From assembly GCA_965644495.1 (NCBI GenBank), contig CBFFSA010000084.1, positions 1 through 19,570 of the forward strand: a stretch of 19,570 bases of DNA, written 5' to 3'. The position numbers were made by a program, and so were the translations under genes. Source of the stretch: Perkinsela sp. CCAP 1560/9. Lineage: Eukaryota > Protista > Euglenozoa: Kinetoplastea. A model generated the notes under the pieces. That model ran no database searches. It saw only the letters and a list, made by a program, of their open reading frames with translations, and was not told the origin of the DNA. Shown here one piece after another: positions 1 through 19,570 of the stretch. Numbering within the stretch: position 1 is the stretch's first letter; every line of letters starts with the position of its first letter.

Positions 1-2
1 AC

Positions 3-335
3 TTCTTATTTGGAGGATTTCAGTTCGTCCACTTTCCGATTTGTTGTGGATATATCACACTTTATGGAAACAGCTTCAGTGGTACGCCTGGCTTTCACTT
101 GATGCCTCCACACATGGAATACCTTGACATGAGCTATAACGAACTAGCTGGTAGTGTTGATTTTTCAAATCTCCCTTCTACTTTATCACACATGTACTTA
201 CGAGGCAATGCCGAGCTCAGTGGAAAGCTAGACGTTTCAGGACCATTGAAGAATTTGTTATATGATATTGAAGGCACAAGGATATCCGTAAAAAGCGGTG
301 AACTCTGCCGCTTGAAATCAAGTTTCGTACACTAA
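3..335 (+). CDS. Leucine-rich repeat protein (LRR paralog 1), 5' part outside the window
   Basis: The frame of ORF 99..335 is open from base 3 (FLFGGFQFVHFPICCGYITLYGNSFSGTPGFHLMPPHMEYLDMSYNELAGSVDFSNLPSTLSHMYLRGNAELSG...). It has ~24-aa LxLxxNxLxGxxxxxxLP repeats and the same C-terminal 'N..L.G...I.GT.I' ending as paralog 2. Confidence 0.85.
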   Translation, partial: FLFGGFQFVHFPICCGYITLYGNSFSGTPGFHLMPPHMEYLDMSYNELAGSVDFSNLPSTLSHMYLRGNAELSGKLDVSGPLKNLLYDIEGTRISVKSGELCRLKSSFVH

Positions 336-353
336 AAATTCTAACATTATAGT

Positions 354-524
354 TGCGGTGGTTGTATAACTACCGCTCTACCCTCGATTATTGAAAAAAA
401 AGTGAACAAAAACAGTGAAAATATAAAGAGGAACACAGTAAAAAATATAATAGAAGAAAAAAATATAAAAGGGGGCTCCGGTGGTCCAAAATTGAAAAAA
501 AAATTGAAAAAAATGACGGGTCCA
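354..524 (+). repeat. Left arm (high-identity part) of long inverted repeat
   Basis: TGCGGTGGTTGTATAACTACCGCTCTACCCTCGATTATTGAAAAAAAAGTGAACAAAAACAGTGAAAATATAAAGAG...GGCTCCGGTGGTCCAAAA matches the reverse complement of 5853-6018. Confidence 0.92.
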
Positions 525-659
525 TGGGGGGGTCTATGGGGCGCATACCGCACGAATTTTTGTAAAAAAACTATTTTTCGAAAAAAACCCTCAGAAGGGG
601 TAGCCGGGGTGTTGGCGCGCATTTTCTACCCCCCTACCCGGGGGTGACCCCCCCGCGTA

Positions 660-2724
660 CCGTCACCCCCCCCTCACTTGTCCCGACGAAAAGGCCAAAA
701 AAGCGGAAAAGGCGGATAAGTCGCGTGGTAGGACAAGTCACGTAGCATCAAGAGGAATTGTATGACACATTTTTGTATACATCCGTATAAATGAAAAAAC
801 CCTTTTTCGAACTTATTAGGTCGGCTTCAGTGCCATCAGCGAGATGGCAGTGCCAGGGAAGACCACGAGGAGGTCCCGACCTTACTTCCCCATTTCGGTT
901 TTGTGCCCAACTTTCAGAGGAAGTTGGGTTTTTTACAGAAACGGTAACTATCGTTTGAGCAGCTTTCCGAATATACCGTGAACGATAGAGATAAGATGAG
1001 CCCACGTACCAATAGATTAAATACATTGTATATGAATACAAATGTTGTTTACAAGGGAAAAACAATATAAACAGAAAATACACTTTAGATTTATTCTGCT
1101 TTATTATAATACAGCTATCATTTTTAATAAAACAGTTTCTGATCTTTAATGAAGCATACAACGTAGTAATTAGCATGCGTTCCGGTCCCTTAAAGCTGCG
1201 TGCTGCACGCCATATAGTTTTTGTGCTGCACTTGCGTGCTGCACTTGTCCATATAGTTTTTCTTAAAAGTTTTGTTAACGCTTGTGTCCATAAGTTGTAC
1301 TAATGGGGTACATCCGCCAGGAATAAACAAAATATCGATATGCATTTCCTTCAAGTATAGAAGAAGTTCCTTAGTGCGATGTGCCGCGTAAAGATCTAGG
1401 ACAAACAAAGTCTTGTAAGGTGGGTACTTTGATCGGTCGCAAAACTCAAATTTGGCCCACTGTAAAAATGTTACGCCAGTCGTCCAACCAGATTTCGACG
1501 TAGTGCTGGTACATTTATATTTCACGCTGGCTCGCTTGGTTTCTTGTGCAATGGGTCCAACTTCTGATTGCGTGCTCCAAATCAGGTGAGGTGGGTTCAT
1601 CAGGTGCGACCAGGTGTCATCACAATTTTTCGAAGAACGACACCACATCCAACAAGTTGTGATGTTACGCTCTTTTCCAGTTGTACATATCTTGACGCGC
1701 TTGGTTCCACGAAATTCATATGTTAGGCTCCCAGGCAACAGGTGTTTCGTCTCCATGAACAATTACTTTGTAACCGCTGCAGTCTGTATTCATGAGAGAA
1801 AGCATATCTTTCCATTTTCGCACTTTTTCTTCTGCATCCACAGGAAGTAACTGGGTGCAACCGTTCACCCGGCGAACAGAAATGTTTGCCCACTTACAAA
1901 AGCGCAACCAGAATGCCTGTTGGCCTCGGTCAGTAAGGTTCCGGAAGTGATCAGAAACTTCGTTGAACTATTTGACCATCATGCTCTTGGTCACTGAAAC
2001 TAACGACTCCCTCAACACCTGCACAGTTTCCAATCCACCCTGATACACCTCACGATTTCGGAGTGGAGGGTGATATTGGAATTTGTTTCCATACCCGAGA
2101 TGCACAAGTTGCTGCCATTCTTTTTTCTTTGAATAAATTTTGCTTACAGTGCTACCGTCGACCTTGTATTTTTGTGCCACTTTCGCTTGACTTTTTCCGT
2201 TGTCAAGCGCAGCACAAATATTGCGCTTTTGCTGGATGGTGATGTCAATGCGTATTTTTCGCTCAGATGCACTCTGTGATACGGAAACCTGCTGAGCATT
2301 TATGACACTTCCAGACGTGTCTCCCACATGGGGTATTACCGCTGTGTTTTCAGCTTTCGAAGTGATGGGTACTAGTACTTGACTAGCGTTGAATGGTTCA
2401 TAGTTTCGCTTCTTTCTAGACATCTTGATTCAAATAGTTTTTAAAGAGATAATATCTGTAGACTGAATGTCGTACTTTGTAGAGATAGTCGTAACTGCTT
2501 TCTATTAAATACAACTGTAATAGTATGATATACTATTACTGTAATAGTATGTAATAGTAATAAAATTTAATATGTTAGATACAACTGTATCTGCAACTAA
2601 AAAATACGAAAAATATAATTTTCAAAAATGACCAAGGGCAGGGGACTACCACGTGACATATCCGCCCTCAAATTCTCAAAAGCGGATATGTCACGTGGTA
2701 GGACAAGTGAGGGGGGGGTGACGG
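660..2724 (-). mobile_element. pogo-superfamily (Tc2/Passer-like, DD35D) DNA transposon, full termini, 2065 bp
   Basis: Perfect 24-bp TIRs CCGTCACCCCCCCCTCACTTGTCC (660-683, 2701-2724), flanked by TA at 658-659 and 2725-2726. Subterminal repeats GCGGATAWGTCRCGTGGTAGGACAAGT (712-738, 2682-2708; partial inverted copy 2645-2665). Internal transposase remnants. Confidence 0.93.
1190..2423 (-). pseudogene. pogo/CENP-B-type DDE_1 transposase, disrupted
   Basis: Three fragments in different frames. 1968-2423 has an N-terminal HTH (ITIQQKRNIC...SQAKVAQKYKVDGSTVSKI). 1716-~1935 has FWLRFCKWANISVRR and HGDETP (first D). 1190-~1725 has TYEFRGTKRVKICTTGKE, FVLDLYAAH (second D) and IPGGCTPLVQLMDTSVNKTFK (third D, 35 residues later). 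There is a premature TAG at 1968-1970, frameshifts near ~1935 and ~1720, and a scrambled duplicated C-terminus at 1196-1262. Confidence 0.9.
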
Positions 2725-3632
2725 TATGCGGAGGACGCGTCCTCCAAGTTCGGATTCTTTTGGAAAAAAAGAATTGAAAAGAAATTCAACTTGGCGAAAA
2801 AAATATTTTTCCAAAATCGTTCCCCCTATTGTATTTTGACAGTTTGAGACCCATAGTAGCTTTCTCCGCAGTTGTTTTCGCCAGATATCCCTTCTTCGAG
2901 CCGTGGTATGCACCTCAAAATGACCCAATTCTGACTAAAAAAGGTGAAAAAATATTTTTCGGACCCCAAGGTTCCTTTTTCTGTCGAAAGATTGGTGTGG
3001 GTTCCAACGATAGTGCGCACTGTCCGTGTTGTGAGACATTGACTATTTTTTCATCTATAGTCATGCATAGTCATACTCGGAAAGTTGAGAGGGGGAGAAG
3101 CGCTTTGAAAAGCTGGCCTCTAATGGAAGGGCCCTGCTACCACGCCGGCTGCTTTGCAGCATTAAAATAGTTGCATCTGTAGCATTTCGTTATGATGCTT
3201 CCCACTGAATGCAGACTTCTCTCCCCGTGTGTAAATCGGAGTGCCATCAACAATCGCTGTCACTCGAGAAAACTGGATGAATTTATGACTTTGATTTCGG
3301 ATAAAAATGGAATGTTGGAATAGAAATATCATTTAGGGGTAAAGTTCCCCGAAAGTTTATCATAAAATTGTGAACATGTGATAGTAATCGGCGCATATAC
3401 AGGGGGGTAAATCAGATGCTGCGGGGGGTCTAAAAATTGCAAAACGCTTCCAATTTTGGAAAATGATAGCGCATTCGAGAGCTCTCGCAGAGTTCTATGT
3501 TTTAGAAAAGGCAGTTTCCCGGGGTATAGGGGGGTGTTCAACTGACAAGAGGCCCAAAAACGTCAAAATACAAAAATTGTGAGAAAGGTTTTAGACGACT
3601 AATAATTACTCCCCCTTTCATAATTCTTTATA

Positions 3633-4119
3633 CCGTGGAAACATTAATTAAGAATTACACTAATTAAAGGAAAATGGTTTTCAAAAAAAATAATTCCCTT
3701 AATTAGTGTTCCCTTATTTTATTTTCCCTTAATTGCTTTGCGGGAATCAAGTTGAAAATAGCCCAAGATCACGAGATAAGTAGAGGGGGGACCACCCATT
3801 ATCACACTTTTTTCGGTGTGATAATAAGCGAATTGTGTGATAACAAGTGAAATTTCGAAAAAGTGTGTTAATTAGTGGATACTTCACGTATTACAACGTT
3901 TTGGTTGCACATTTCGAATTTTTGACCTAAGCTCTGAAATATTGGTATGTGGGCTCAGCGGGGGTTGGGGGCGCCTGGGCCATGGGCGGAAAGAATAATT
4001 ATTAATTATTAATTGCCTGAAAATGCCAAAAATCGATGAAAAATAATTATTCCCTTAATTAGTGTTCCCTTAATTGGCGTTCCCTTATTTAATGTGTCTC
4101 TTAATTAATGTTTCCACGG
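3633..4119. mobile_element. MITE A (487 bp), CCGT-terminated pogo/Tc2-like non-autonomous element
   Basis: Perfect 21-bp TIRs CCGTGGAAACATTAATTAAGA (3633-3653, 4099-4119). TA at 3631-3632 and 4120-4121. Repeated subterminal TTCCCTTAATTAGTGTTCCCTTA motifs. No ORF. Confidence 0.92.
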
Positions 4120-4535
4120 TAAATATAAACTATAAGTGTTTCGGCCATTTATATTTATATTATATAAAGCTTTAAAAGTGTTTGGTACCGAGATGGATTT
4201 ACTTATAAAAATATTTATATAAATTATGATCATTAGTTCTACTAGTTCTTATGCGCTTTCATGGGGTGTTTGCATGAATAGGTGACCGAATTTTATATGT
4301 AAAATCACACGCATTTGACCACATTGATGAATTTGATAAAAAAAGAGGACCGAACCATAGAACCGAAAAAGAAATTTCTTAAACTATTAGACTTCTTAAT
4401 GTCTAAAAAAAAAGTTCATATGCATTTGATACGCGAATCAGAAGTTTTTTATCCTGCTCTTTTAGCGTTTTTCAGGCGTTTCAAAGTTTTATATAAATTT
4501 ATATAAAACCATGAAACATTTCGGGCTCGAACTTA

Positions 4536-4887
4536 AACCCTGTTCCGGGTTATTGTGCCCCCCCTGCACAATAACTGGCTCTAGGCACAATAACTAAATA
4601 TTGGAAAAAAATAAAAAAAAGGGTAAAAAAATTTGGCGCCGCTTCGCGGCGCCTTTTATATGGACAAACACGTTCATGCGCAGAATGAGTTCTATTTAAC
4701 GAGTGCGCTGTTGAACAAACAACGTTAATTTCGAGAAAGTGGGAATAAAAAACCTGCAAAAAAATGCGGCGCCGCTTCGCGGCCCCATATTTTGGAGAGG
4801 GGGGGCACAATAATAGTGGTCGTTTCCACTTATTGGGCCCCCCCTGCACAATAGGTAGCTCTAGGCACAATAACCCGGAACAGGGTT
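4536..4887. mobile_element. MITE B (352 bp), TA-flanked non-autonomous element
   Basis: Perfect 24-bp TIRs AACCCTGTTCCGGGTTATTGTGCC (4536-4559, 4864-4887). TA at 4534-4535 and 4888-4889. A ~45-bp subterminal direct repeat (4550-4594, 4830-4874) is built on GCACAATAA. Two internal GC hairpins GGCGCCGCTTCGCGGC. Confidence 0.92.
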
Positions 4888-5003
4888 TATAAAGAATTAT
4901 GAAAGGGGGAGTACAACTTTCTCCTTACCCCCCTGCATAATATCACAAACAACAACAGAATAATATTTATGTATCTCGAATTATGCATAGATGACTTATT
5001 TTT

Positions 5004-5045
5004 GACTCCTGAGGACTCCTGAGGACTCCTGAGGACTCCTGAGGA
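5004..5045. repeat. Tandem repeat (GACTCCTGAG)x4
   Basis: Four exact 10-bp units plus GA, read directly. Confidence 0.95.
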
Positions 5046-5256
5046 TATAGAGCCGTCTGTATCTTACCCATTGCGGAAAAATGATTTTATTTATCTGTTT
5101 TTTCCCGTTTCCGCGACTAGGACTCATGTCCGAAGTGAAGACTAAACATTTCGAAGATAATCTGGATAAAAGCGCTGTATTAAAATACGAAAGGGCATGA
5201 CTAACCGAAATTATAAATTTCGGCGAAATAACATAGGTCATTTACCACCGCAATTA

Positions 5257-5361
5257 CTTTTTTAGGCTCTTCGTTAAACACGGTGGTTGTTTTCAAAGTC
5301 ACTCATGTTGCGCTCTTCGCGTTGAAAACTACCACCGCGTTTAACGAAGAGCCTAAAAAAG
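5257..5361. repeat. Long hairpin / mini-MITE with 40-bp arms
   Basis: CTTTTTTAGGCTCTTCGTTAAACACGGTGGTTGTTTTCAA (5257-5296) and TTGAAAACTACCACCGCGTTTAACGAAGAGCCTAAAAAAG (5322-5361) pair with two mismatches around a 25-nt loop. Confidence 0.88.
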
Positions 5362-5773
5362 AAAAATCGCGAAAAGGTCATGCATAATCTATTTTTTTGG
5401 GGGAAAAACCTCGATTTTTAGGCAAAAAATTCGAAAATTTAACCCAAATTTAGGCCGTTTTTGATGCCTTACCAGTAGGGATAGGAGGCGAATATGACGA
5501 AACAAATGTCGTAGAATGGTAGCTGGGGTTCCAAACTCCTAAAACACGTTTTAGGGTTCTTGAAAAATAATATTTTTACTTTTTTTGGGTCAATTTGTTT
5601 TTGGTCACCCCAAAAATTTCGGAATTTTTGACCTTGTCAGACCCCTCCTGCGCGTACCAGGGGGGGTACCCCCATGGGCGGGGGTCAAAAAATATCGCCG
5701 CGGCATACTCTACCACTTCCCTGCGCTCGATTTTGAAAAGCAAAAAATTCGAAAAAATATTTCGCGACGTATG

Positions 5774-5859
5774 CCCCCCCCCCTGGACCCCCCCTGGACC
5801 CCCCCCTGGACCCCCCCTGGACCCCCCCCTGGACCCCCCCTGGACCCCCCCCTGGACCC
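5774..5859. repeat. C-rich tandem repeat (C7-10 TGGA)x7
   Basis: C-run lengths 10,7,8,7,8,7,8, each followed by TGGA. Confidence 0.95.
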
Positions 5860-6018
5860 TCCATTTTTTTCATTTTTTTTTTCAGTTTTGGACCACCGGA
5901 GCCCACTCTTATATTTTTTTCTTCTATTATATTTGTGTGTTTCTCTTTATATTTTCACTGTTTTTGTTCATTTTTTTTCAATAATCGGGGGTAGAGCGGT
6001 AGTTATATAACCACCGCA
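5853..6018 (-). repeat. Right arm (high-identity part) of long inverted repeat
   Basis: Reverse complement of 354-524, ending in the hairpin GCGGTAGTTATATAACCACCGC. Confidence 0.92.
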
Positions 6019-6120
6019 CTAAAAATTAATGAGAGGGAGAGAACACCTTCGAATTTCAATGCATCAAAAGTAAAATGTCCATGAAATTTCTAGATAAAGA
6101 AATTAAACGTTTTTTCTCTG

Positions 6121-6854
6121 ATGTTGCACACGGTTTCTGTTGCGGATATTGAAGACCCACGCATGACGCGACGTGCAGCTAAAGTGAGCACAACTAATCT
6201 TCCACAAGAATATAGTCTTAAGCGACTTATACATGAAATTAAAATACGCATCCCTCGTGGAGTACATCAACCCCGGCTTGTGAGTGGGATGGCGTCTCCT
6301 GTAACAAAGATGATGAGATATTGGCCATAAATTGGATCACGAAAAAACTGACAGGTTCGTTCACGTTTGATTACCTTCCCAAAACATTATACAACTTTTA
6401 TGTCTATAATAACCAACTTTCTGGGGAAGTACCACTGGGTACTCTTCCCTCCACTTTGCGCACTTTCAGTCTTTGGAATAATAAATTTAGCGGGCCATTG
6501 GACTTGACCGCTCTCCCGCTGAATTTGAAGACTTTGATGCTTTCAGGTAACCAATTTACAGGAGAAGTTTGTTTAATTAAATTACCCTTAGGGTTAACCA
6601 GTCTCTGTCTTGACAGGAATCAATTATCAGGTGAACTTTGTTTCAGTGCACTCCCAAATCTGAATATTCTGCGTCTTCACGATAATAAATTTTCCGGAAA
6701 CGTTAATTTAAAAAGCCTTCCGGGTACGTTAGAGGACCTCGATTTGTCATCGAACGCTAAGTTGTGCGGCGAGATAGAGGAACACCATCTTCCTAAAAAC
6801 TTGCGCCTCGGATTCATGATTTTCGGCACTAATATTACACTATTAACGGTGTAG
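6121..6854 (+). pseudogene. Leucine-rich repeat protein (LRR paralog 2) with a single frameshift at ~6241-6244 (pseudogene or sequencing error)
   Basis: ORF 6121 gives the family N-terminus (TRRAAKV...LPQEYSLKRLIHEIK). The second frame continues NTHPSWSTSTPACEWDGVSCNKDDEILAINW into ~6 LRRs (e.g. LPSTLRTFSLWNNKFSGPLDLTALP). Adding one A to ATTAAAATACG joins the two frames. Confidence 0.85.
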
Positions 6855-7196
6855 TGTTGCGTGAAGTTGTACATACCTAGTTGTAATGTAGTTGTACTAA
6901 AGAAGTTGTATTCAAATGCTGAGTTATTCTTTCAAAAGAACGGGTGATAATTGCTGTCCCCACCCGTTTTTGCGCACCTCGTTTTTTGTTGTTGAAAAGT
7001 GCGCCTACATAAAAACAACTACACCTTAGCTCAGTGTGCGCTTAAAAGGGGTCTTCCCGGGTGTGCTTAAACGGGAGCCGGTAGTGTACGAACCTTATAA
7101 TTCAATGCATTGTGCATTCTCTCTGTTGAGATCCATTAGTTTGTTTTTATACGCTATGTTCGATTTTTATTACGGCTACATTCGATTTACAAAGTC

Positions 7197-7757
7197 ATGA
7201 ATATTCCTAAGAGCACAACACGTGTAGGTAAGGTCAGGGGCATGTTTCTCCCTCCGGAATACGAACTCACAAAGTTTATTAGTGATGTTCAACATCTGCA
7301 TGAGTCATGGAATACGACTACACCAGCATGTGAGTGGATTGGTGTGACGTGTAGTGAGCAGGGTGAAGTTAGCCGCATTGCTTGGAGTGGTCGAGGGCTG
7401 TCCGGTACATTGCACTGGGGTTCGATACCACGTTCTGTAACATACCTCGAACTGAGCGGCAACCAATTGAGCGGGTGCGTAAGTTTCGCGTTGCTTCCTC
7501 CTGTACTTGAAAGAATGTGGCTCCAAGGCAACAGGTTTACAGGTGAGCTTCACCTTGAGGACCTGCCGCCTACCATGCTAATTTTGAACATCTCTCGAAA
7601 TCAGTTCACTGGCTTTGTTGATCTTTCTTTTCTGAAGGATTCAAAAATTACTGGATTCGATATAACGGGGAATACAAATCTCCAAGGATCAATTCCGGAA
7701 GGCATTCAACCTAAAACTGTTTGGTGGGGCATTCCGGCTGATTGGATTCAGAAGTAA
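7197..7757 (+). CDS. Leucine-rich repeat protein (LRR paralog 3)
   Basis: Cys-capped N-terminus HESWNTTTPACEWIGVTC (LRRNT_2-like) followed by LxLxxNxL/FxG repeats (LELSGNQLSG, MWLQGNRFTG, LNISRNQFTG). Confidence 0.9.
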   Translation: MNIPKSTTRVGKVRGMFLPPEYELTKFISDVQHLHESWNTTTPACEWIGVTCSEQGEVSRIAWSGRGLSGTLHWGSIPRSVTYLELSGNQLSGCVSFALLPPVLERMWLQGNRFTGELHLEDLPPTMLILNISRNQFTGFVDLSFLKDSKITGFDITGNTNLQGSIPEGIQPKTVWWGIPADWIQK

Positions 7758-8315
7758 GATACAAAAAATATATTGCCCAAACTTTGATTGTCACAGCTTC
7801 ATAAACCTCAACAACTTTATGAGCTTGTATCAGTAATCCCCCATTCTTTACATAGGACAATTTACATAAACCCCTGAGCAAAATAAGGCACTCCCTCCAA
7901 AATCTCAATGCTTCGCTCGTTTGAGCTAATTTTTGTAGCATGTTATAGATCTCAACACAAAGAGTTTGCGCGTTAAGAAACGGAACAAGAAATCCCAAAT
8001 GCGTACATTTGAAAGTCTGATTACAGGGAAGAAATTATGTTGTGTCAAAAAAGAATCGTGTTAATTTCTGGGATTAACACGACCTTTGTTGACACAACAT
8101 ATGTTGCCATAGGGGTTGGGGGTATGCTATCGGCCCTGGGTCGATACCATACCCCCCCGGTATGGTACAGGTCACAGGTATGCTAAACCGGAACCCCGTT
8201 AATTTTGTAGGCCAAGTTTTACGAAATTTAGATTCCCCAGCATTAGCTGATCCCCCCTGCATATGAGCTGATTCCCCCTGCATAACTTTAATACCCATTA
8301 AAGCAAATTAATACC

Positions 8316-9068
8316 TTGAATATTTTATCTAATTTATGTGCAATGGATTCCCAAGCGCCATCCACGCGCCCGTCGAAGGTTGGTGCATTGAATTTACCAC
8401 AAGAAATGGATCTTGAGCGGCTCATTAGTGGTTTGCACACTCGTCATGAGAGCTGGAATTCTAACATTTCTGCTTGCAAATGGAAAGGCATCAAGTGTAA
8501 TTCAGAGGAGAAAGTTACTGAAATAAGGTGGAGCCGTCAAAAGTTGAGTGGATCCATGAAGTTTGCATGTATTTTAATGTCCGTTGAGACGTTCGATATT
8601 GAATACAACAGCATATCAGGGGAAAACGTCCTAAGTGAACTTTTCCCATTAGTAAAGTTAAGGCATTTCTTTCTGGGAGGAAACAAATTTACAGGCAATC
8701 CGGATCTGACAAGACTCCCGAAGCTTTCTACCGGCGCATGGATGGAAACAAACGAATTGTCTGGTGATATATGCCTTACACAGTTGCCCGTCGATCTGGT
8801 ACATCTTGATGTTAGTGATAATTTCTTGACTGGAAAATTAGATTTCGGGGCACTCCCGGACACTCTGGAAGCTTTATACTTGTCTGGAAACGAATTCGAA
8901 GGAATGATAGATTTATTAGTCCTTCCGGAGAAGCTAGATACCCTTACTTTAGATAAAAATCCGCTTCTGGAAGGTACAATAGTCGCAAGCAAGCTCCACC
9001 CGCGATTAAAAAAAAGTATTCAATTATTGAGATGTTCTTCGAATACCAAACTTGTAGTCGTAGATTAA
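8316..9068 (+). CDS. Leucine-rich repeat protein (LRR paralog 4); first ATG at 8343
   Basis: TRPSKV...LPQEMDLERLISGL..HESW....ACKWKGIKC cap plus ~6 LRRs (FLGGNKFTG, LDVSDNFLTG, LYLSGNEFEG). Confidence 0.9.
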   Translation: MNILSNLCAMDSQAPSTRPSKVGALNLPQEMDLERLISGLHTRHESWNSNISACKWKGIKCNSEEKVTEIRWSRQKLSGSMKFACILMSVETFDIEYNSISGENVLSELFPLVKLRHFFLGGNKFTGNPDLTRLPKLSTGAWMETNELSGDICLTQLPVDLVHLDVSDNFLTGKLDFGALPDTLEALYLSGNEFEGMIDLLVLPEKLDTLTLDKNPLLEGTIVASKLHPRLKKSIQLLRCSSNTKLVVVD

Positions 9069-9600
9069 TAAACTAACTAATTTATACTACTAGATTAATA
9101 TTTAAAAAAAATCGATTCGATAAGCGCGGTGGTTGCTTTCGGAATAGAAGTCACGCATGCTGTACGCTTCGCCTCACAGCCTTTTTCTCCTCACTTTTCT
9201 CCAAAATTCGCAAAGCCCGCTACTTAGAAGGGGGCAACGCATCTGTGGTGATTGACAGAATATGGAAGAATTCGAAAGTGAAAGGCAAAACAATTTCGGC
9301 GACGCTTCGCGGCACCTACGTTTTTCCCATTTGTGTGATGCACTGGTGGTGGTGCCTAAGCTGCGAAATGACTCATTTGGTATAATGAATATAAACCCCC
9401 CTTCATCAATAAGGCACCCCACCTTATTTTTGGCACAGCGCGACGTGGATAGGTTATAGCACCATCTTGTCGTGTAAAATTTTGAGATCTGCACGTTCCC
9501 GATGTTTTTAGAACTCTTCACGAATAAAAAATAAAACCACACTTTTTCAATATTTTTTTTACAGAGTCATGCTAATATTAGCAGAAAAATTACATGTTCA

Positions 9601-10093
9601 GCGGCCAGGGGGGAAGGGGGGCAATATGAAAATGGCGTCACAGCTCTTCGCTAGGGGAACGAGATCTTTCGTTTGCAACAAAAATGAGCAAAAACAGATA
9701 ACAAACATTGAATTTTTCACGTGGTGGAATATTTGACTTTGATTGATTTTTTCTTGAAACGGTGAAAATTCAACTTTTTTAAGCAATTCCCTTTATTTTC
9801 CTCTTGAAGGGGTCTAAGGGGGTTAGGATATCACTTTCTCGTTCAAAATCATGGGATCTACACTTTCCCGCCATTTTTAGATCATTTTAAAAAACGAAAA
9901 AAAATCTGCTTTATTTTTGTGCATCATCATACCACACCAACTTTAAAAAACAAACACTCTGCGGCCAAGGGGCACAAGTGGGCCAATATTAAAAAATATT
10001 AAAAAATAGCGGCGAAGCTCGTTGCTAGGGGAACGAGACCTCTCGTTTTCAATAAAAATAAGCAAAAAAATATTAAAAAATGAATTTCTCATG
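9601..10093. repeat. Degenerate ~120-130 bp direct repeat pair (9601-9722 and 9961-10093)
   Basis: Both copies start GCGGCCA.GGG...CAATAT, share the exact core GCTAGGGGAACGAGA (9650-9664, 10024-10038), and end AGCAAAAA...TGAATTT.TCA. Confidence 0.75.
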
Positions 10094-11460
10094 AGAGGAG
10101 AAGTTTTGATGCGCGGTAATTTCGCGAGCTTTCACATCACGCAAACGAGAAAAGGGGACGAACCGAGCTTAATGAACCCCGGCTCACGAAATCTGACCCC
10201 CCACTTTGTTGCATTTTGCACATCTCATCAAGAGAATTTTGTGCCCAGGAACTGGATAAAACAAAGAACAATGAGCATGTTTAAAAAAAGAAAAGCAAAG
10301 ATCCTCGCCCGCCCTCGTGGCAATGCATTTTACAGTTTAGATTTTTTTTGCCGTAGTATGAGAAAACATGGCGCCGCTTCTTTTTTTCACACCCTTTCCA
10401 TCACCCCCCTCCTTTATTATGGACAAAAGCGGAAAAAATGTCCATAATAAAGCGGAAGCCACAGTAATATTACGTGAGGCGCTGCGGGTGTGCATCACCC
10501 ACAGTCTATTACTGGGGGGGTATACGGTAATTTTTTTCATGCTTTCGGGAAAAAATTTATGCATTTGGGAAAAATCGTGCTTAGAGAACGCAAAAATGAC
10601 ACTAGATACGTATCCAATATCCAATATGATAACCCTTCTTTTTTACCACAAATTGAAGTCATTTGCGATAGTTTTTAAATGGATTTCTTAATTTGTCAAC
10701 ATGTTCTACTGTTAAAGGATGTCTGAAACATAGCGTCTTATATTTCGTGTCTATTCCTTCTAGCTAAAGCACACAAGGATTATAGTTCCTAGTACCGTGC
10801 TATGAGCAAGGTTCGACTTTCCGGTGGATTACGCTGATTCGGGAGAAGAGGAAGTCAGCTATCTCTTGGCTAAAGGAAAAAACTAAAAACTGAAAGGAGA
10901 AAACTGAAAACTCTTAAGGAAAAAACTGAAAATAATGATTTTTTTAGGGTGGGCAAAACAAAATCGGGGGTTTCGACAAAAATTTTAAGGTTTTCGAACG
11001 CGTTTCGAACGAAGCGACTAAAAATGAAGAATTTGCGAAGGTCCAGAATAATCCAACTTTTGGTACAAATGTCTTCCTCCCATTTTTACAGACTTTTTTG
11101 TTTTCAAGCTACATTGAACCGAAAAAATATTCCTGAATCTATTGACGTGATGAATGTTGATGTTTTGTCCCTTAAACGCCCTAGCTACATATCCGCACGG
11201 AAAATATACTCCCCCTGTCATTAATAATGATAATCTTAAAAAAATTATCATTCTATGTGGTGAAAACTCTTAAAAAATTATCAACTTATTTTCATACAGA
11301 ATTTTCATACAAAATGTTTTGTGTCTTACAAAGTACGTTTTTTGAACTAAAAAATGATCAACCTATTTTCATGTTTTGGGCCACATTTTCGTATTTATTT
11401 TTCCATGACTTCTCGATCATTGAAAAAGAAGCGCCCATTAGATGAATCGGGCTCCATTGA

Positions 11461-12201
11461 GTAAGAATTGGAAACAAGCTTTATTTTGGTGAAGATGAGA
11501 GTTTAGTGGCTGAAGTAATCGATAATACTACCTCTAGAGGAAGAACTTTGCGTTTTCTTTATGATGGCTCATATACCGATTTCAGGAGAAAACTGAGGCA
11601 GTTGGGGGAAACTCCACTACCAAAATATATAAAGCGTGATGTGGAGCCACAAGACGAAGAGCGCTACCAGACTATTTATGCCAAATACGAAGGAGCGGTG
11701 GCCGCGCCAACCGCTGGATTGCATTTTTCCAAGCATTTGCTAAAAAGATTGGAAATAAAGGGAATAGACTTTGCCGAAGTTACACTTCATGTAGGTTTGG
11801 GAACTTTTAACCCGGTAGAAGTGGAAGATTTGTCTAAACACAAAATGGATAGCGAGGAATTGGTTATTGATGAGCGGGCTACCGAAGTTGTAAATACGGC
11901 AAAAGACAACAAAAAACGAGTGTGTGCTGTAGGTACCACAGTAATGCGCGGATTGGAAAGTGCGGTTTCATCAGAGCACTCATTGAATACCTTTGAAGGG
12001 TGGACCAACAAATTTGTTTTTCCACCATATGATTTCAGTATAGCCAATTGCATGATCACCAATTTCCACCTGCCAAAATCTACACTATTGATGATGGTTT
12101 CGGCATTCATTGGTCATGATTTGATGAAAAAAGCATACAAACAGGCTATTTTGGAGCAATATCGCTTCTACTCCTACGGGGACGCTATGTTGATTATCTA
12201 A
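11461..12201 (+). CDS. queA: S-adenosylmethionine:tRNA ribosyltransferase-isomerase QueA, 5'-truncated (roughly the first 100 residues missing)
   Basis: Motifs [59 protein letters not shown] and [13 protein letters not shown]. The frame is open from 11461 ([19 protein letters not shown]); a TGA at 11458-11460 and non-homologous DNA lie upstream. Confidence 0.95.
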
Positions 12202-12239
12202 AATTACAGTTCCTAAATCATAGGGAATCAGAAAAATAC

Positions 12240-12276
12240 AATCCCGTTTAGCGTTTGACTTTACGGGATTTTTCTT
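12240..12276 (+). terminator. Possible intrinsic terminator after queA
   Basis: AATCCCGT / ACGGGATT stem followed by TTTCTT; the loop is long (15 nt). Confidence 0.4.
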
Positions 12277-12291
12277 GACTATCTTTAAGCG

Positions 12292-13332
12292 GTGGAAATC
12301 AAAAAAAAGGACATAAGGGCATTGACTAAAGAGCAGCTGCGGAATTTCTTTGTGGACCAGGGCGACAAAGCATTTAGAGGTAATCAGGTGTATGAATGGC
12401 TGTGGCAAAAATCAGCCCATTCCTTTGAAGCCATGACCAACATTTCTAAGGAAACCCGACAAATGTTGGAGGACAATTTTGTGATTAACCATATAAAGGT
12501 GGACCAGATGCAACGAAGTGCGGATGGGACTATCAAAAATGCTGTGCAGCTTCATGACGGACTGGTGGTAGAATCTGTGCTCATTCCCACCGAAACTCGA
12601 ACCACGGCATGTGTGTCCAGTCAGGTTGGTTGCAGCTTGGATTGCAGGTTTTGTGCCACTGCACGCTTAAAACGCATGCGCAACCTAAATCCGGATGAAA
12701 TCTATGATCAGGTTGTTGCCATTGACAACGAAAGCAGATTGTATTTTAATAAGCCTTTGAGCAATATTGTATTTATGGGAATGGGAGAACCCCTTATGAA
12801 CTATAACAATGTGTTGAAAGCCATTGAAAAAATAACCTCCCCAGAAGGGCTTGGAATGTCACCAAAACGAATTGTGGTGTCTACCTCCGGAGTGCCTAAA
12901 ATGATAAAAAAAATGGCGGATGAAGAGGTGAGGTTTGGTTTGGCCGTTTCCTTGCATTCCGCAATTGATGAGGTTAGGACCTCCATTATGCCCTTTAATG
13001 CTACTTTTCCGTTGAAGGACTTAAGGGAAGCGCTACAATATTGGTACAACAAGACCAAAAACCGAATTACATACGAATACGTTGTCTGGGAGGGAATCAA
13101 TGATACACTAGAGGCGGCTAACGCTTTGGTTAAATTCTGCAAGTTTGCCCCTTCCAAGGTGAACATCATCGAATATAATCCCATAGACGACGGGGAATTT
13201 CAGCAAGCACCAGCAGAGGCAGTTGAAATGTACAAAAGGACTTTAGAGCGAAATGGAATTACCGTAACTGTCAGACGTTCTAGAGGTAAAGATATTGATG
13301 CGGCCTGTGGTCAATTGGCCAATAAACAGTGA
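12292..13332 (+). CDS. rlmN: 23S rRNA (adenine2503-C2)/tRNA methyltransferase RlmN
   Basis: Radical SAM motif CVSSQVGCSLDCRFC, MGMGEP, AVSLH and C-terminal DIDAACGQL. Confidence 0.97.
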   Translation: MEIKKKDIRALTKEQLRNFFVDQGDKAFRGNQVYEWLWQKSAHSFEAMTNISKETRQMLEDNFVINHIKVDQMQRSADGTIKNAVQLHDGLVVESVLIPTETRTTACVSSQVGCSLDCRFCATARLKRMRNLNPDEIYDQVVAIDNESRLYFNKPLSNIVFMGMGEPLMNYNNVLKAIEKITSPEGLGMSPKRIVVSTSGVPKMIKKMADEEVRFGLAVSLHSAIDEVRTSIMPFNATFPLKDLREALQYWYNKTKNRITYEYVVWEGINDTLEAANALVKFCKFAPSKVNIIEYNPIDDGEFQQAPAEAVEMYKRTLERNGITVTVRRSRGKDIDAACGQLANKQ

Positions 13333-13487
13333 ACAATTATCAATAATCAATTGTAAGTAGCCATCCGATTGTTGTAATTTATCGAAGCTTTCTACCTGCC
13401 AACTTAAAACTTGATGCTTCCCATGACCAACTCTGGCATTTTGCCTACTTTTAGGCTTCCAAAACTAGAATAACAAAAGGCATAGTA

Positions 13488-14465
13488 TTGAAGGTAGTTT
13501 CACAGATTAGGGAACCCATTGAGCAGGAAATGCAACTTTTTGAGGAAAAATTCCTCAAGTCCATGTCTTCCAAAGTGGCCTTGTTCAACAGAATTACCTA
13601 TTACATTGTAAATCGAAAGGGGAAGCAAATGCGCCCCATGTTCGTATTTCTCACTGCCAAATTGATCAACAATGGCAGCGTAAATGACAGAACCTACTGC
13701 GGAGCCTCCATCATAGAACTGATTCACACGGCAAGTTTGGTCCATGATGATGTCGTGGACGACAGCCATAAAAGGAGAGGCTTTTTTTCTATAAATGCGC
13801 TCTGGAAAAATAAAATAGCTGTATTGGTTGGGGATTTTCTTTTTTCTAAAGGGGTATTGGTGGCTTTGGAGAACAAAGACTATGATCTTTTGCACATTAT
13901 TTCCAACGCGGTCAAGGATATGAGCGAAGGAGAACTGCTCCAAATTGAAAAAGCACGCCTTTTAGATATCACCGAAGAGGTGTACTATGATATCATTCGT
14001 CAAAAAACGGCTACTTTGATTGCAGCTTGTTGCAGTATGGGGGCCTGCTCAGTAAAACCGGATTCTGAGGATGTGGAAACCTTTAGAAAATTTGGGGAAC
14101 TGTGCGGCATGGCTTTTCAGATTAAGGACGACCTTTTTGACTATGGAGCTGAGAAAATTGGCAAGCCAACCGGAATAGATATCAAAGAACAAAAAATGAC
14201 GTTGCCACTTATTTATGTCCTCAATCAAAGTGACAAAGAAAAAAGACGCTGGCTCATCAATTCCATTAAAAATCACAACAAGGATAAAAAAAGGGTCAAG
14301 GAAGTTATCACTTATGTTAAGGAAATGGGGGGATTGGAATATGCTGTCACCAAAATGTTGGCTTTTAAGGATGAGGCACTGTCCTTGTTGAACAATTACC
14401 CTGATTCTGCATATAAAAGCGCCCTTACCTTGATGGTCAACTATGTGGTAGACCGTAAAAAGTAG
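13488..14465 (+). CDS. ispB: Polyprenyl diphosphate synthase (IspB-like trans-prenyltransferase)
   Basis: GKQMRP, first Asp-rich motif LVHDDVVDDSHKRRG, KTA and second Asp-rich motif FQIKDDLFD. Chain length cannot be determined. Confidence 0.9.
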   Translation: MKVVSQIREPIEQEMQLFEEKFLKSMSSKVALFNRITYYIVNRKGKQMRPMFVFLTAKLINNGSVNDRTYCGASIIELIHTASLVHDDVVDDSHKRRGFFSINALWKNKIAVLVGDFLFSKGVLVALENKDYDLLHIISNAVKDMSEGELLQIEKARLLDITEEVYYDIIRQKTATLIAACCSMGACSVKPDSEDVETFRKFGELCGMAFQIKDDLFDYGAEKIGKPTGIDIKEQKMTLPLIYVLNQSDKEKRRWLINSIKNHNKDKKRVKEVITYVKEMGGLEYAVTKMLAFKDEALSLLNNYPDSAYKSALTLMVNYVVDRKK

Positions 14466-14593
14466 TCTTTCTAGGGGCTAGATGTTTAGTATTTGGATTA
14501 TGGAATTTGAGATTTGCCCAATCAATCTATCTTAAAATGTACTCCTTAACATAACTTCAGTTTGACCATTGGGTATTAATTTTCCTTTTCGGG

Positions 14594-14620
14594 GCAACCT
14601 TTTTAAGAACTACTGCGTCT
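14594..14620 (+). promoter_or_regulatory. Putative ECF sigma-dependent (autoregulatory) promoter
   Basis: GCAACC (-35) ... CGTCT (-10) with AAC-N17-CGT spacing, ~30 bp upstream of the ECF sigma start. Confidence 0.6.
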
Positions 14621-14651
14621 ATCTTTATAACATACAAATTGAGAACCACTG

Positions 14652-15224
14652 TTGAAGATTGTGTCCCTATATACCAACGAGAAACTTTTGATTAAAAAGG
14701 CCATTGCAGGTGATCCGCATTGCCAAAAACATCTGTATGAAAAGTTTGCACCAAAAATGTTAGGTGTTTGCCGACAGTATATCAGGGATCTACAATTTGC
14801 GGAGGATGTTATGATCAATGGGTTTGTAAAGGTTTTTAAGAATTTGGGTTCTTTTGAACATCGTGGAAGTTTTGAAGGATGGATTAGAAAAATTATGGTA
14901 AGGGAGAGTATCTCGTATTTGCGAAAAAAACAGTTTGTGGTGTACGATGATGAGGCATTACAGTCCCAACCAAAGAATTCCGCGGAAGAATCATCAATCT
15001 TGGACGTGGAATATGTACAGCAATTGATCGATGAACTCCCAGAAGGGTATAAAATGGTGTTTTTGTTATATGCCATAGAAGGTTATAAACACCAAGAAAT
15101 AGCAAAAATGCTGAAAATTTCGGAGGGCACTTCCAAGTCGCAATTGTTCAAAGCCAGGAAAATTTTACAGGAAAATTTGAATTTAAAAGGAATTTCACCT
15201 CAAGCTGGGTCGCGAGGCAAATAG
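14652..15224 (+). CDS. ECF-family RNA polymerase sigma factor
   Basis: Region 2 (AEDVMINGFVKVF...SFEGWIRKI) and region 4 (LPEGYKMVFLLYAIEGYKHQEIAKMLKISEGTSKSQLFKAR). Confidence 0.95.
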   Translation: MKIVSLYTNEKLLIKKAIAGDPHCQKHLYEKFAPKMLGVCRQYIRDLQFAEDVMINGFVKVFKNLGSFEHRGSFEGWIRKIMVRESISYLRKKQFVVYDDEALQSQPKNSAEESSILDVEYVQQLIDELPEGYKMVFLLYAIEGYKHQEIAKMLKISEGTSKSQLFKARKILQENLNLKGISPQAGSRGK

Positions 15225-15232
15225 TAGGAATC

Positions 15233-15958
15233 ATGGAGAAATTGGAAAAACATATAAAGGATAAACTTGAGGAACGAAAAATTGCACCTTCGCCCAAGGC
15301 TTGGAAAAGCATTGCTGGCCAAATAGGGACCTCTACAACCTCAAGAAAAGAAGGGAAATATTGGTATGCCATAGCAGCAGGGTTTATAGGACTTCTGTTA
15401 GCTTCCATATTCTTTTTTGCATCCGATAAGTCGGAGGTGACCATTCAAGTTGTTGATGGCAATGATCCCAAGTTGGAAAAAGAGTCTTCCACTCCTTTTG
15501 CGATTGATTCCACTCCAAATGGGTCCAAAACATCCACTGTTGTTGGTATTAAAAAAGAAGATTTAATCTTTGATAATCAAATAAAAGAAAATACTGGTCA
15601 TACTTCTGCATCCTTAAAAAAGAAGGAGTTAGTTGCCAAACAATCCATTCAAGATAGTTTTGCCCAGGAGTCTGATCCATTAATTGCGCAAAAAGTCAAT
15701 GAAGTGTTTGCCAAGGTTACGCTTTTAGAACACGTTAATTCGGAGGTTAGTGATGCAGAAGTGGATTCGCTGCTACGTGCAGCCCAACGTGAGGTGCTTT
15801 CAGAACAATTATTTACCGCGGAGGGAACCGTAGATGCCATGGCCTTGTTGACGGAAGTTGAAGATGAACTGGATGCAACATTCCGAGATCAAATTTTTGA
15901 AGCACTCAAGGAAGGCTATGTTAAACTTCGTACCGCTGTGGCAGACCGTAACAATTAG
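15233..15958 (+). CDS. Putative membrane-anchored anti-sigma factor
   Basis: Directly follows the ECF gene. Short cytoplasmic N-terminus (IKDKLEERKIAPSPKAWKSI), one hydrophobic helix (YWYAIAAGFIGLLLASIFFF), then a helical C-terminus. The function is inferred from context. Confidence 0.7.
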   Translation: MEKLEKHIKDKLEERKIAPSPKAWKSIAGQIGTSTTSRKEGKYWYAIAAGFIGLLLASIFFFASDKSEVTIQVVDGNDPKLEKESSTPFAIDSTPNGSKTSTVVGIKKEDLIFDNQIKENTGHTSASLKKKELVAKQSIQDSFAQESDPLIAQKVNEVFAKVTLLEHVNSEVSDAEVDSLLRAAQREVLSEQLFTAEGTVDAMALLTEVEDELDATFRDQIFEALKEGYVKLRTAVADRNN

Positions 15959-15992
15959 AATTTATTCATCAATCAAAAATACCTTGTTGGTT

Positions 15993-16032
15993 TCCCGCTC
16001 CCAGTTCTGCTGGGAGGGGAGATTAGGAGGGG
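15993..16032. repeat. GC-rich intergenic stem-loop, REP-like
   Basis: TCCCGCTCCCAG-TTCTG-CTGGGAGGGGA followed by GATTAGGAGGGG, between two co-oriented genes. Confidence 0.45.
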
Positions 16033-16048
16033 TAAATCAAAAACAATC

Positions 16049-17116
16049 ATGAGAACAATTACTTTGTATTTAGCGGCTTTTTTATTGCTGTTTATGGCCC
16101 AAGAAACTGTTGGACAGGAACGATATCAGCAGAAGATTGAAAAGCTAATAGAAAAAAAGGAAAAAATCACCCAACAAGAAAAAGAAGCCTTAAAACAGGA
16201 GGTGAAGGATATCAATAAAAGATTGGGAAATGGAGATTTAAGTTTGGAAGAAGCTAAACTGCTCAAAGCAGAAGTGGCTAAAAAAAGGGCTTTGAATATA
16301 GAGAATCGAGCAGCCATAATTGATAATCAAATAGCACTTCTGGAGCGCAACAAGGGTGGGGCCTTGGCCATTACCGACGAAAATACTATTGAGGATGAAG
16401 ATGGTTTTTCTATTCGAATAGATGGGGAGACTATTTTTTTCTCCAATTCGAGAAACAGGAAGAAAGATATACCCTATGATCGGAGGACCTATTCTGACCC
16501 GGTTTTTGCCATTGGTCTAAACAACGCACTAATAGATGGCCAATCTTTGGATGAATCACCATATAAAATAGGAGGAAGCCGTTTTTTTGAAATGGGGTGG
16601 CAGTGGCGCACTCGAGTTTTTAAAAATTCGAATTGGATGCGATTCAATTATGGCTTTTCCTTCCAGTTTAATGGATTAAAGCCGGATGACAACCAAATTT
16701 TTGTTCAAAATGGTGATCAAACGGTTTTGGAGGAGTTCGAATTTGAGTTGGACAAGTCCAAACTTCGAATGGATAACTTGGTTTTCCCCGTACATTTTGA
16801 ATTTGGTCCTTCCCGCTTTAGAGAAACTGAAAAGAGTATACGTTATTCTCTTCATAAACAGTTTAGAATAGGAATTGGGGGCTATGGTGGCTTTAACCTA
16901 GGGACTCGTCAGAAGCTAAAATACTCCAGGGATGGAGAAAATATTAAGGACAAGTTTAAAAGGGATTACAATACCAGCGATTTGATTTACGGGTTGAGTG
17001 GCTATGTAGGGGTAGATGAGGTATTGCTCTATATTAAGTATGACCTAAACCCCATATTTAAGGACGCTACGGTTGAACAACATAATATTTCTTTGGGCCT
17101 AAGGTTTGATTTATAA
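16049..17116 (+). CDS. Secreted coiled-coil plus outer-membrane beta-barrel protein (PorT-like/hypothetical)
   Basis: Signal peptide MRTITLYLAAFLLLFMAQETVG, K/E-rich coiled coil, amphipathic beta-strands (FPVHFEF, FRIGIGGYGGF) and terminal strand ISLGLRFDL. Confidence 0.78.
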   Translation: MRTITLYLAAFLLLFMAQETVGQERYQQKIEKLIEKKEKITQQEKEALKQEVKDINKRLGNGDLSLEEAKLLKAEVAKKRALNIENRAAIIDNQIALLERNKGGALAITDENTIEDEDGFSIRIDGETIFFSNSRNRKKDIPYDRRTYSDPVFAIGLNNALIDGQSLDESPYKIGGSRFFEMGWQWRTRVFKNSNWMRFNYGFSFQFNGLKPDDNQIFVQNGDQTVLEEFEFELDKSKLRMDNLVFPVHFEFGPSRFRETEKSIRYSLHKQFRIGIGGYGGFNLGTRQKLKYSRDGENIKDKFKRDYNTSDLIYGLSGYVGVDEVLLYIKYDLNPIFKDATVEQHNISLGLRFDL

Positions 17117-17176
17117 CCAACTGACAATTAGAGCTCGGTCGAGAACTTTCGGGTTCTGGCCGTGCTCATTTTGCCA

Positions 17177-17413
17177 TTAAACTGCACTTTCCATTTCCTT
17201 GGTGAACTCCTCTTGGTAAAACCCTCTTTTACAATAGGAGCATTCGGCAAAGCGTGAAGTACCTATTTTAAACAAAGGAATCCAAAATAAATGGAAATAG
17301 TTGGCTTGGGAAACAGAGGTCAGGGTTCCATTTTGACCGCAATGTGGACAGCTTACCCCAATTAGTTTTTTGCTTTCTTTTTTGCCCAGTCTGGTTCCGA
17401 AAAAGAGAATCAT
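17177..17413 (-). CDS. Zinc-ribbon domain protein
   Basis: MILFFGTR...CPHCG...YFHLFWIPLF...CSYC pattern. Confidence 0.88.
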   Translation of the reverse strand: MILFFGTRLGKKESKKLIGVSCPHCGQNGTLTSVSQANYFHLFWIPLFKIGTSRFAECSYCKRGFYQEEFTKEMESAV

Positions 17414-17469
17414 ACTTTTTTATGAAAATACGATTTTCGGCAGTAAGACAAACTTTTTTGGCTTAAGGT

Positions 17470-17841
17470 TTAATAGAATCCCGCTTTAGGACTAGGTCCA
17501 TATCGGTTATTTGTAGGATCACTATTTTTAGTCAACAGGATGAAAAGCCAGATGAGTCCAATTACTGGAATGAGAATTACCAAAAACATCCAACCACTTT
17601 TTCCAACATCATGTAAACGTCTAACCGTTGCAGCCAAGGTCGGGGTGAAAAAACCAATAACAAACAAGATATATAAAGGTCCGAAAATCAAGTGTTCAAA
17701 GGCTAATTCAAAAACATTGTCCAAAGCCAGTAGGAACAAGCTGAAGAACAGACAAAAAAGCGTGAACATCCAGTATTCGGCCCTTCTGCCTCTTCCTTTA
17801 AAATTTGTATAATTGCGTAATACTTGTAAAAACCATTCCAT
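17470..17841 (-). CDS. DUF805 (YhaH-like) inner-membrane protein
   Basis: NFKGRGRRAEYWMF, VRRLHDVGKSGW and NRYGPSP motifs. Confidence 0.93.
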   Translation of the reverse strand: MEWFLQVLRNYTNFKGRGRRAEYWMFTLFCLFFSLFLLALDNVFELAFEHLIFGPLYILFVIGFFTPTLAATVRRLHDVGKSGWMFLVILIPVIGLIWLFILLTKNSDPTNNRYGPSPKAGFY

Positions 17842-17890
17842 GGGGTTACATTTTTTTTGTTACATAAATGATGATTTATGAGGTTGATGT

Positions 17891-18041
17891 TTATTGACTA
17901 TGCCAGTTTTCAATGCCAGTTACAATGTCTAATGTCATGGCAATACCTGCAAGGATTATGTTGAATAGCAAGAACATCCAGTATTCTTTTCTTCTTGCCC
18001 TACCTTTAAAATCTGCGTACTGCTTTTAAATACCATTTCAT
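17891..18041 (-). pseudogene. DUF805 paralog remnant (frameshifted, truncated)
   Basis: The minus strand reads MKWYLK, then after a frameshift QYADFKGRARRKEYWMFLLFNIILAGIAMTLDIVTGIENWHSQ*. The RRLHD half is missing. Confidence 0.8.
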
Positions 18042-18258
18042 ATTAGTGTTTCTGGTTGGTTTTCCTACTCGTGTGGCTTTTCGGTTCCGCCCTGTTTATT
18101 CATGGTTTCCTATCTCCATGAATTTTAAACTAAAGTAGAATTATGTTAAAACAATTTTAGGGTTGAATTGACGGATGCCCATTTTGATCTGATGAATAGC
18201 CGATTTCAGCAAAAATTTTGTTTTTTAGCTACCTTTAAAGACTGATAATATTTAAGGA

Positions 18259-19570
18259 TTGATTTCAAAGACCACCATAGATCAAGTTTATGAGACCGCC
18301 CGTTTGGAAGAGGTGATTGGCGATTTTGTACAATTGAAGAAATCTGGCTCCAATTTTAAAGGCCTGAGCCCTTTTACGGATGAGCGTACCCCTAGTTTTA
18401 TGGTTTCTCCAGTGAAACAAATATGGAAGGACTTTAGTAGTGGAAAGGGAGGGAATGTGGTTGCTTTTTTAATGGAGCATGAGCATTTTACCTATCCTGA
18501 AGCCATTAAGTACCTGGCCAAAAAATACAATATAGAGTTAGAGGAGACCGAACAGACCAATGAGGAAAAAGAACAGGCCAACGAACGAGAAAGCATGTAT
18601 TTGGTCTCTGAATTTGCACAAAAGAACTTTGCGGAGACACTGTGGTCAACCGAACCAGGCAAAGCAATTGCCCATTCCTATTTTAAGGAAAGGGGATTTA
18701 CGGACGGGACGATAAAAAAGTTTGGTCTTGGTTATAGTTTGGATGAATGGGAGGCGTTTACCAAGTCTGCGATAGATCAGGGATACCAATTGGAGTTTTT
18801 GGAGAAAACAGGTTTGACCATTGTTAAAGAGCAAACTGGAGGTGAAGACAGGAGATTTGACCGATTTAAGGGCAGGGTCATGTTTCCTATCCATTCTATG
18901 AGTGGGCGTGTGCTAGGCTTCGGAGGGCGTATCCTCACGAGTGATAAAAAAGCGGCCAAATACCTAAATTCCCCTGAAAGCGAGATTTACCACAAAAGCA
19001 AGGTATTGTATGGTATCTATTATGCCAAACAGGCCATTGCCAAAGAAGACAATTGTTATTTGGTGGAAGGGTATACCGATGTTATCCAATTCTATCAAAA
19101 AGGTGTGGAAAATGTGGTTTCGTCCAGTGGTACTGCCTTGACACCAGAACAGATTAGGTTGATCAATAGGCTTACTAAAAATATTACTGTACTCTTTGAT
19201 GGCGATGCAGCTGGATTACGAGCCTCGTTACGAGGAATAGATCTGATTCTGGAACAGGGTATGAACGTAAAAGTGTGCTCTTTCCCTGAAGGGGAAGATC
19301 CGGATAGTTTTGCCAAAACCAATACCTATGAGGACTTAGTGTTGTACCTCGAAGAAAACGCCAAGGATTTTATTCAGTTTAAGACTTCACTGTTAGCGGA
19401 AGAGGCTGCCAACGACCCCATAAAAAGAGCAGACACCGTTAGGGACATTGTTAATAGTATCAGCAAGATACCAGACCAGATAAAACGAGAGATTTATATT
19501 CAAGAATGTGCAAAAATAATGCACATTTCCGAGGAAGTGTTATATAACACGCTTGCCCAAATCAACAAAA
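18259..19570 (+). CDS. dnaG: DNA primase DnaG (runs off the window end)
   Basis: Not in the ORF track because there is no stop. TTG start gives MISKTTIDQVYETARLEEVIGDFVQLKKSGSNFKGLSPF..., followed by DRFKGRVMFPI, GFGGR, KYLNSPE, VEGYTDV, Toprim LFDGDAAG and GEDPDS. Confidence 0.96.
   Translation, partial: MISKTTIDQVYETARLEEVIGDFVQLKKSGSNFKGLSPFTDERTPSFMVSPVKQIWKDFSSGKGGNVVAFLMEHEHFTYPEAIKYLAKKYNIELEETEQTNEEKEQANERESMYLVSEFAQKNFAETLWSTEPGKAIAHSYFKERGFTDGTIKKFGLGYSLDEWEAFTKSAIDQGYQLEFLEKTGLTIVKEQTGGEDRRFDRFKGRVMFPIHSMSGRVLGFGGRILTSDKKAAKYLNSPESEIYHKSKVLYGIYYAKQAIAKEDNCYLVEGYTDVIQFYQKGVENVVSSSGTALTPEQIRLINRLTKNITVLFDGDAAGLRASLRGIDLILEQGMNVKVCSFPEGEDPDSFAKTNTYEDLVLYLEENAKDFIQFKTSLLAEEAANDPIKRADTVRDIVNSISKIPDQIKREIYIQECAKIMHISEEVLYNTLAQINK

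Follow-up and report, generated by a model that had tools for sequence, protein, structure and literature searches.

A contig joining protist repeats to a Flavobacteriaceae queA gene is best explained as an artefactual chimera

The stretch of DNA analysed here (19,570 bp; the window) is a complete contig, termed C84, of a eukaryotic assembly that comprises 21.0 Mb in 110 contigs. At a single point, C84 passes from protist DNA into the middle of a bacterial queA gene. On the basis of sequence comparisons, we consider C84 to be an artefactual chimera that derives from a chimeric molecule or read, and not the product of inter-kingdom gene transfer. We give this reading a probability of about 0.9, a figure in which a mis-join of purely computational origin has a small part. 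Both parental sequences are cut internally, they meet in one nearly blunt join, the contig has the size of a read, the bacterial half has not diverged at all from its parent, and the rest of the bacterial chromosome is absent from the assembly. This combination of characteristics fits a chimera, and the join is most likely not biological.

The junction inside queA

A reading of this DNA made from its letters only (hereafter the sequence-only reading) had described homology to QueA as beginning abruptly, with an in-frame TGA immediately before it. This description is borne out by our analysis, which refines the breakpoint to 11460/11462. When the region from 11401 to 12201 is translated, the frame is stop-ridden until the TGA at 11458-11460 and then remains open through the C-terminal 246 residues of QueA. 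The TGA is part of the eukaryotic sequence, which ends in '...CCATTGA'. Similarity to eukaryotic DNA, represented by the related contig C55 and by other copies of a dispersed repeat, stops at 11460, and identity to the bacterial parent begins at 11462. The join is therefore almost blunt, with a single orphan base between the two parents (Table 1).

The eukaryotic sequence breaks off inside a MITE-like repeat for which C55 provides the unbroken site. C55 runs 96 bases past the point equivalent to 11460, and these 96 bases recur on C57, C19, C7, C11, C1 and C10. Beyond the break, C55, C1 and two copies on C19 share approximately 30 or more further bases, and in total the repeat extends past the break in C55 and in at least seven further copies. 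Because these copies run past the break, the repeat in the window has been severed in mid-element. An interpretation of the junction as a transposon end was rejected, since the repeat copies carry on for 30-96 bases or more and the BLAST matches halt at 11460 because the query becomes bacterial there. No transposon end, target-site duplication or extended homology was found at the join.

Some short words are shared by the two parents near this position. GAAAAAT is present in both at the break, although 3 nt out of register. Downstream of the break, ACAAGCTTT occurs at a distance of 8 nt in the eukaryotic copy and of 14 nt in the bacterial one. A microhomology-mediated join was rejected because neither word explains the observed sequence, and their presence near the break is probably a coincidence.

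Table 1. Coordinates of features in the window, with the evidence for each.
Feature	Position	Strand	Evidence
Eukaryotic (protist) segment, LRR-gene and transposon array	1-11460		C55 matches; tetranucleotides
Damaged pogo-type transposase, DDE_1 and CENP-B_N ORFs	1190-2423	-	PF03184, E 1.5e-14; PF04218, E 4.9e-07
Three LRR ORFs (6321-6854, 7197-7757, 8316-9068)	6321-9068	+	Pfam LRR_1, LRR_4, LRRNT_2
Copy of a dispersed MITE-like repeat, interrupted mid-element by the junction	11207-11460	+	Alignment of repeat copies
Orphan base G	11461		A in the bacterial chromosome and in each eukaryotic copy that aligns at this base (C55, C1 and a C19 copy)
queA, 3' 70%; starts at base 2 of codon 104 (of 349) and runs to the stop	11462-12201	+	PF02547, E 5.6e-97; identical to the ctg4026c gene
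rlmN (radical SAM rRNA/tRNA methyltransferase), intact, 346 aa	12292-13332	+	PF21016, PF04055; exact product on ctg4026c
Polyprenyl synthetase, intact, 325 aa	13488-14465	+	PF00348, E 8.5e-67; same gene on ctg4026c
ECF sigma factor (187 aa), 241-aa protein, 355-aa signal-peptide protein	14661-17116	+	Gene calls and Pfam (Sigma70_r2/r4_2) for the identical stretch of ctg4026c
Zn_ribbon_15 gene (17177-17413) and DUF805 gene (17470-17841)	17177-17841	-	Pfam on the identical ctg4026c locus
DUF805 RNA leader motif	18058-18124	-	Rfam RF03081, 62.9 bits
dnaG, codons 1-437 of 657, truncated at the contig end	18259-19570	+	Frame runs off the end; PF08275, 126 bits

Parentage of the two halves

The eukaryotic and bacterial halves of C84 have the same GC content (0.40 in each), and screens for contaminants that are based on GC are therefore blind to the join. 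Tetranucleotide profiles, which the sequence-only reading had proposed to compare between the two sides, do detect it. The left half correlates with the rest of C55 at r = 0.97 and the right half with its bacterial flanks at r = 0.95-0.96, whereas the correlation across the join, between the left and right halves, is 0.85. The profiles thus switch at the join.

The assembly to which C84 belongs has a standard 18S-5.8S-LSU rDNA unit (SSU_rRNA_eukarya, 1417 bits, on C11), and its largest contigs measure several Mb. Repeats of the left half of C84 are found in dozens of copies across contigs of Mb size. The pogo-type element has a 96% copy on C57, and the LRR ORFs have paralogues at 80-88% on many of the large contigs. 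The nearest Atlas clusters of these ORFs are 100% eukaryotic in membership, most commonly from Euglenozoa and Discosea, and the ORFs at 7197-7757 and 8316-9068 carry the plant-type LRRNT_2 cap. The pogo domains, the capped LRR ORFs and the dispersed repeats together confirm the assignment of the DNA upstream of queA to a eukaryotic type in the sequence-only reading.

Most of positions 1-11460 matches one end of C55 (52,280 bp), namely its first 7.6 kb on the reverse strand. Identity is 99.6% for window positions 451-1746, 98.6% for 5470-10993 and 98.5% for 10991-11460. Two large indels separate the contigs: window positions 1747-5469 (3.7 kb, into which the right half of the pogo element falls) are missing from C55 at the site C55:6343-6347, and C55 has 267 additional bases near window position 10992 (C55:567-833). 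Apart from these, the differences amount to 50 substitutions and 12 gap openings. We rejected the idea that C84 is a noisy copy of C55, because substitutions preponderate and two large indels are present, a pattern that indicates a second haplotype or paralogue that is real and not noise. The eukaryotic half thus stands to the C55 end as a genuine second haplotype or as a recently arisen paralogue, and the indels are structural differences between haplotypes or paralogues within the LRR-gene and transposon array. Window positions 1-450 have no counterpart in C55. Within this interval, positions 1-346, the 3'-terminal part of an LRR gene, have no close DNA match elsewhere in the 21-Mb assembly, which means that part of the eukaryotic sequence was assembled in C84 only. 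The left end of the contig lies inside this LRR gene.

The bacterial half has a parent of a different kind. In a BLASTN comparison, window positions 11462-19570 are identical to part of ctg4026c of ERZ24900291, with 100.000% identity over 8,109 bp, 0 mismatches and 0 gaps. This parent is a public Flavobacteriaceae contig of 3,459,028 bp that was assembled independently, and it encodes the exact products of two of the window genes. It carries a complete queA (349 aa) with aroA upstream and a complete dnaG (657 aa). In C84, queA is without its first 310 nt, and hence its first 103 codons, and its product covers profile positions 97-322 of the 322 in Queuosine_synth (PF02547). It is a family member but not full-length, and this copy cannot yield a complete enzyme. 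At the other end of the bacterial segment, C84 stops inside dnaG while still at 100% bacterial identity; the segment never returns to eukaryotic DNA.

The 8.1 kb segment is compact, with 88% in open frames, and it is collinear with the chromosomes of Zobellia, Allomuricauda and Flagellimonas at 72-80% nucleotide identity. By these matches the bacterium is a marine member of the Flavobacteriaceae, and no conspecific representative was present among the species-representative matches. The compactness and collinearity agree with the description of this side as bacterial in the sequence-only reading, which had also listed rlmN, the prenyltransferase and dnaG as intact. This is correct for rlmN and for the polyprenyl synthetase but not for dnaG, which is truncated. 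All ORFs of the bacterial half are intact apart from the cut ends, and the bacterial RNA leader is kept. The DUF805 RNA motif lies upstream of the DUF805 gene and, in this expected context, is an ordinary candidate for bacterial cis regulation.

A search of the assembly recovered the 8.1-kb bacterial segment in C84 only. On the bacterial chromosome the segment is flanked by sequence of which 9.2 kb upstream and 7.5 kb downstream were searched for, and both are absent from the assembly. The assembly also yielded no second queA or queA 5' end, the intact gene suggested as a search target in the sequence-only reading being present on ctg4026c and nowhere in the protist contigs. No SusD, no TonB plug domain and no second dnaG were detected in the assembly, where the PF08275 match of C84 is the only one. 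There is likewise no strong match to bacterial 16S rRNA in the assembly. Two weak matches to the bacterial SSU model (393-475 bits, on C11 and C58) were obtained, of which the one on C11 is the eukaryotic rDNA unit and the other, on C58, is the weaker. In public assemblies, the truncated QueA ORF peculiar to the junction and a eukaryotic LRR ORF both had no record, a result that carries no weight.

Weighing the origins of the join

Given 100% identity over 8.1 kb, ERZ24900291 and the protist assembly likely share one source or derive from very closely related ones, and they may come from the same physical sample. Under the chimera reading, the DNA sample would have contained the protist together with a marine Flavobacteriaceae bacterium that was prey, an associate or a contaminant. 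One or very few molecules or reads would then have combined a protist fragment ending inside the MITE-like repeat with a bacterial fragment starting inside queA. Joining of fragment to fragment during library preparation seems the most likely route, and a mis-join at the level of the assembly graph a less likely one; in either case the join would have arisen in vitro or in silico. The assembler would have put out the chimera as a separate contig of read length. At 19,570 bp, and with a single junction, C84 is about as long as one long read, and it presumably rests on one or a few reads. The half-and-half nature of C84 suggests how it could have come through the clean-up that we presume the assembly to have undergone: too much of its sequence would be non-redundant with C55 for haplotig purging to remove it, and too much of it is eukaryotic, with 40% GC in both halves, for decontamination to have caught it. 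A chimeric contig from a sample of protist and bacterium was also the explanation favoured in the sequence-only reading, and it is supported by the 0 differences from ctg4026c and by a left half that is native to the assembly.

Certain observations count against an artefact. The eukaryotic half is an accurate haplotype or paralogue, and C84 is accordingly not simply noisy. Repair by end joining in a cell would also produce a blunt join with one untemplated base. We therefore considered a real and extremely recent integration, in which at least 8.1 kb of bacterial chromosome was end-joined at a double-strand break in the MITE-like repeat on one haplotype. The filler base at a blunt join resembles non-homologous end joining, and since the eukaryotic half is distinct from C55, a heterozygous insertion is formally possible. 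On this account C84 would break off in dnaG because the insert and the free bacterial chromosome, being identical, cannot be told apart by the assembler. A bacterivorous or symbiotic protist of kinetoplastid type would have been caught in the act of acquiring Flavobacteriaceae DNA of which no base had yet changed. If true, C84 would show directly, as few cases do, how gene transfer from a bacterium to a eukaryote begins. We regard both the integration and this scenario of its acquisition as unlikely. The integration finds no positive support. Over 8,109 bp the segment differs from the free bacterium at no position, the genes are pristine, the bacterial regulatory RNA is kept, and there are neither signs of decay nor insertions of host type. 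The second junction was not recovered, no other contig of the assembly holds the flanking bacterial sequence, and the families and flanks searched for in the assembly gave no further bacterial fragment. C84 also has the size of a single read, and the prior that such contigs are real is low.

The remaining explanations have still less in their favour. A mis-join by the assembler or in post-processing, through graph simplification, scaffolding or polishing and with no physical chimeric molecule, might be proposed from the short words that the parents share near the break (GAAAAAT and ACAAGCTTT). However, long-read overlaps and minimiser graphs need far longer matches than words of 7-9 nt that are out of register, a join made in a graph would not be expected to leave the orphan base at 11461, and the size of C84 fits one molecule. 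We consider such a mis-join quite improbable. The opposite direction of insertion, that of eukaryotic DNA into the bacterial chromosome with disruption of queA, had been raised in the sequence-only reading and has nothing beyond the adjacency itself to recommend it. It is contradicted by the chromosome of the same strain, in which the queA locus, at 100% identity, runs without interruption, and by the nature of the eukaryotic part, a host-specific array of repeats and LRR genes that extends over 11.5 kb and is collinear with C55. We hold this to be the least probable of the explanations.

The main value of this case lies in curation: positions 11461-19570 of C84 should be handled as contaminating bacterial DNA that is attached to a genuine protist haplotig, and should be trimmed or flagged. 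Flagging would keep queA, rlmN, the polyprenyl synthetase, the ECF sigma factor and dnaG from being reported as cases of horizontal gene transfer into a protist. More generally, a half-and-half contig whose parts are equal in GC could pass both haplotig purging and decontamination.

Comparison with known systems

Among the species representatives, the QueA proteins of Zobellia, Allomuricauda and Flagellimonas are 91-93% identical to the 246 residues encoded by C84. The gene order, from queA through rlmN and the polyprenyl synthetase gene to dnaG, is likewise conserved between C84 and Flavobacteriaceae. Unlike the queA genes of these bacteria, the copy in C84 is without its 5' part, and the complete gene resides on the bacterium's own chromosome.

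Transfers from Wolbachia to the nuclei of its hosts are genuine integrations of bacterial DNA. C84 resembles them in having a multi-kb bacterial block that adjoins host repeats through a join of the end-joining type. Integrations that have been validated show both junctions, many spanning reads, depth at the level of the host and usually some divergence or decay. C84, in contrast, has one junction, exactly zero divergence and no decay. Claims of horizontal gene transfer in the tardigrade Hypsibius, in turn, were reportedly overturned as contamination. As in such contamination-derived false cases, the bacterial genes of C84 are pristine, reside on a small contig and are identical to those of a bacterium that presumably co-occurred with the host. 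The difference is that the bacterial DNA of C84 is contiguous with host DNA, and for this reason simple filtering by taxonomy or GC would not remove it.

A chimeric read is defined by its depth signature, with a depth of at most 2 at the join and deeper flanks. Chimeric long reads, in which segments of distinct genomes are fused, and the chimeric assemblies to which they lead are a recognised artefact (bioRxiv 10.1101/2025.09.05.674543). Like these reads and contigs, C84 stitches two genomes together at an arbitrary point and is of read size. It also resembles chimeric contigs in that one of its halves duplicates, with no difference, a separately assembled genome that presumably came from the same kind of sample.
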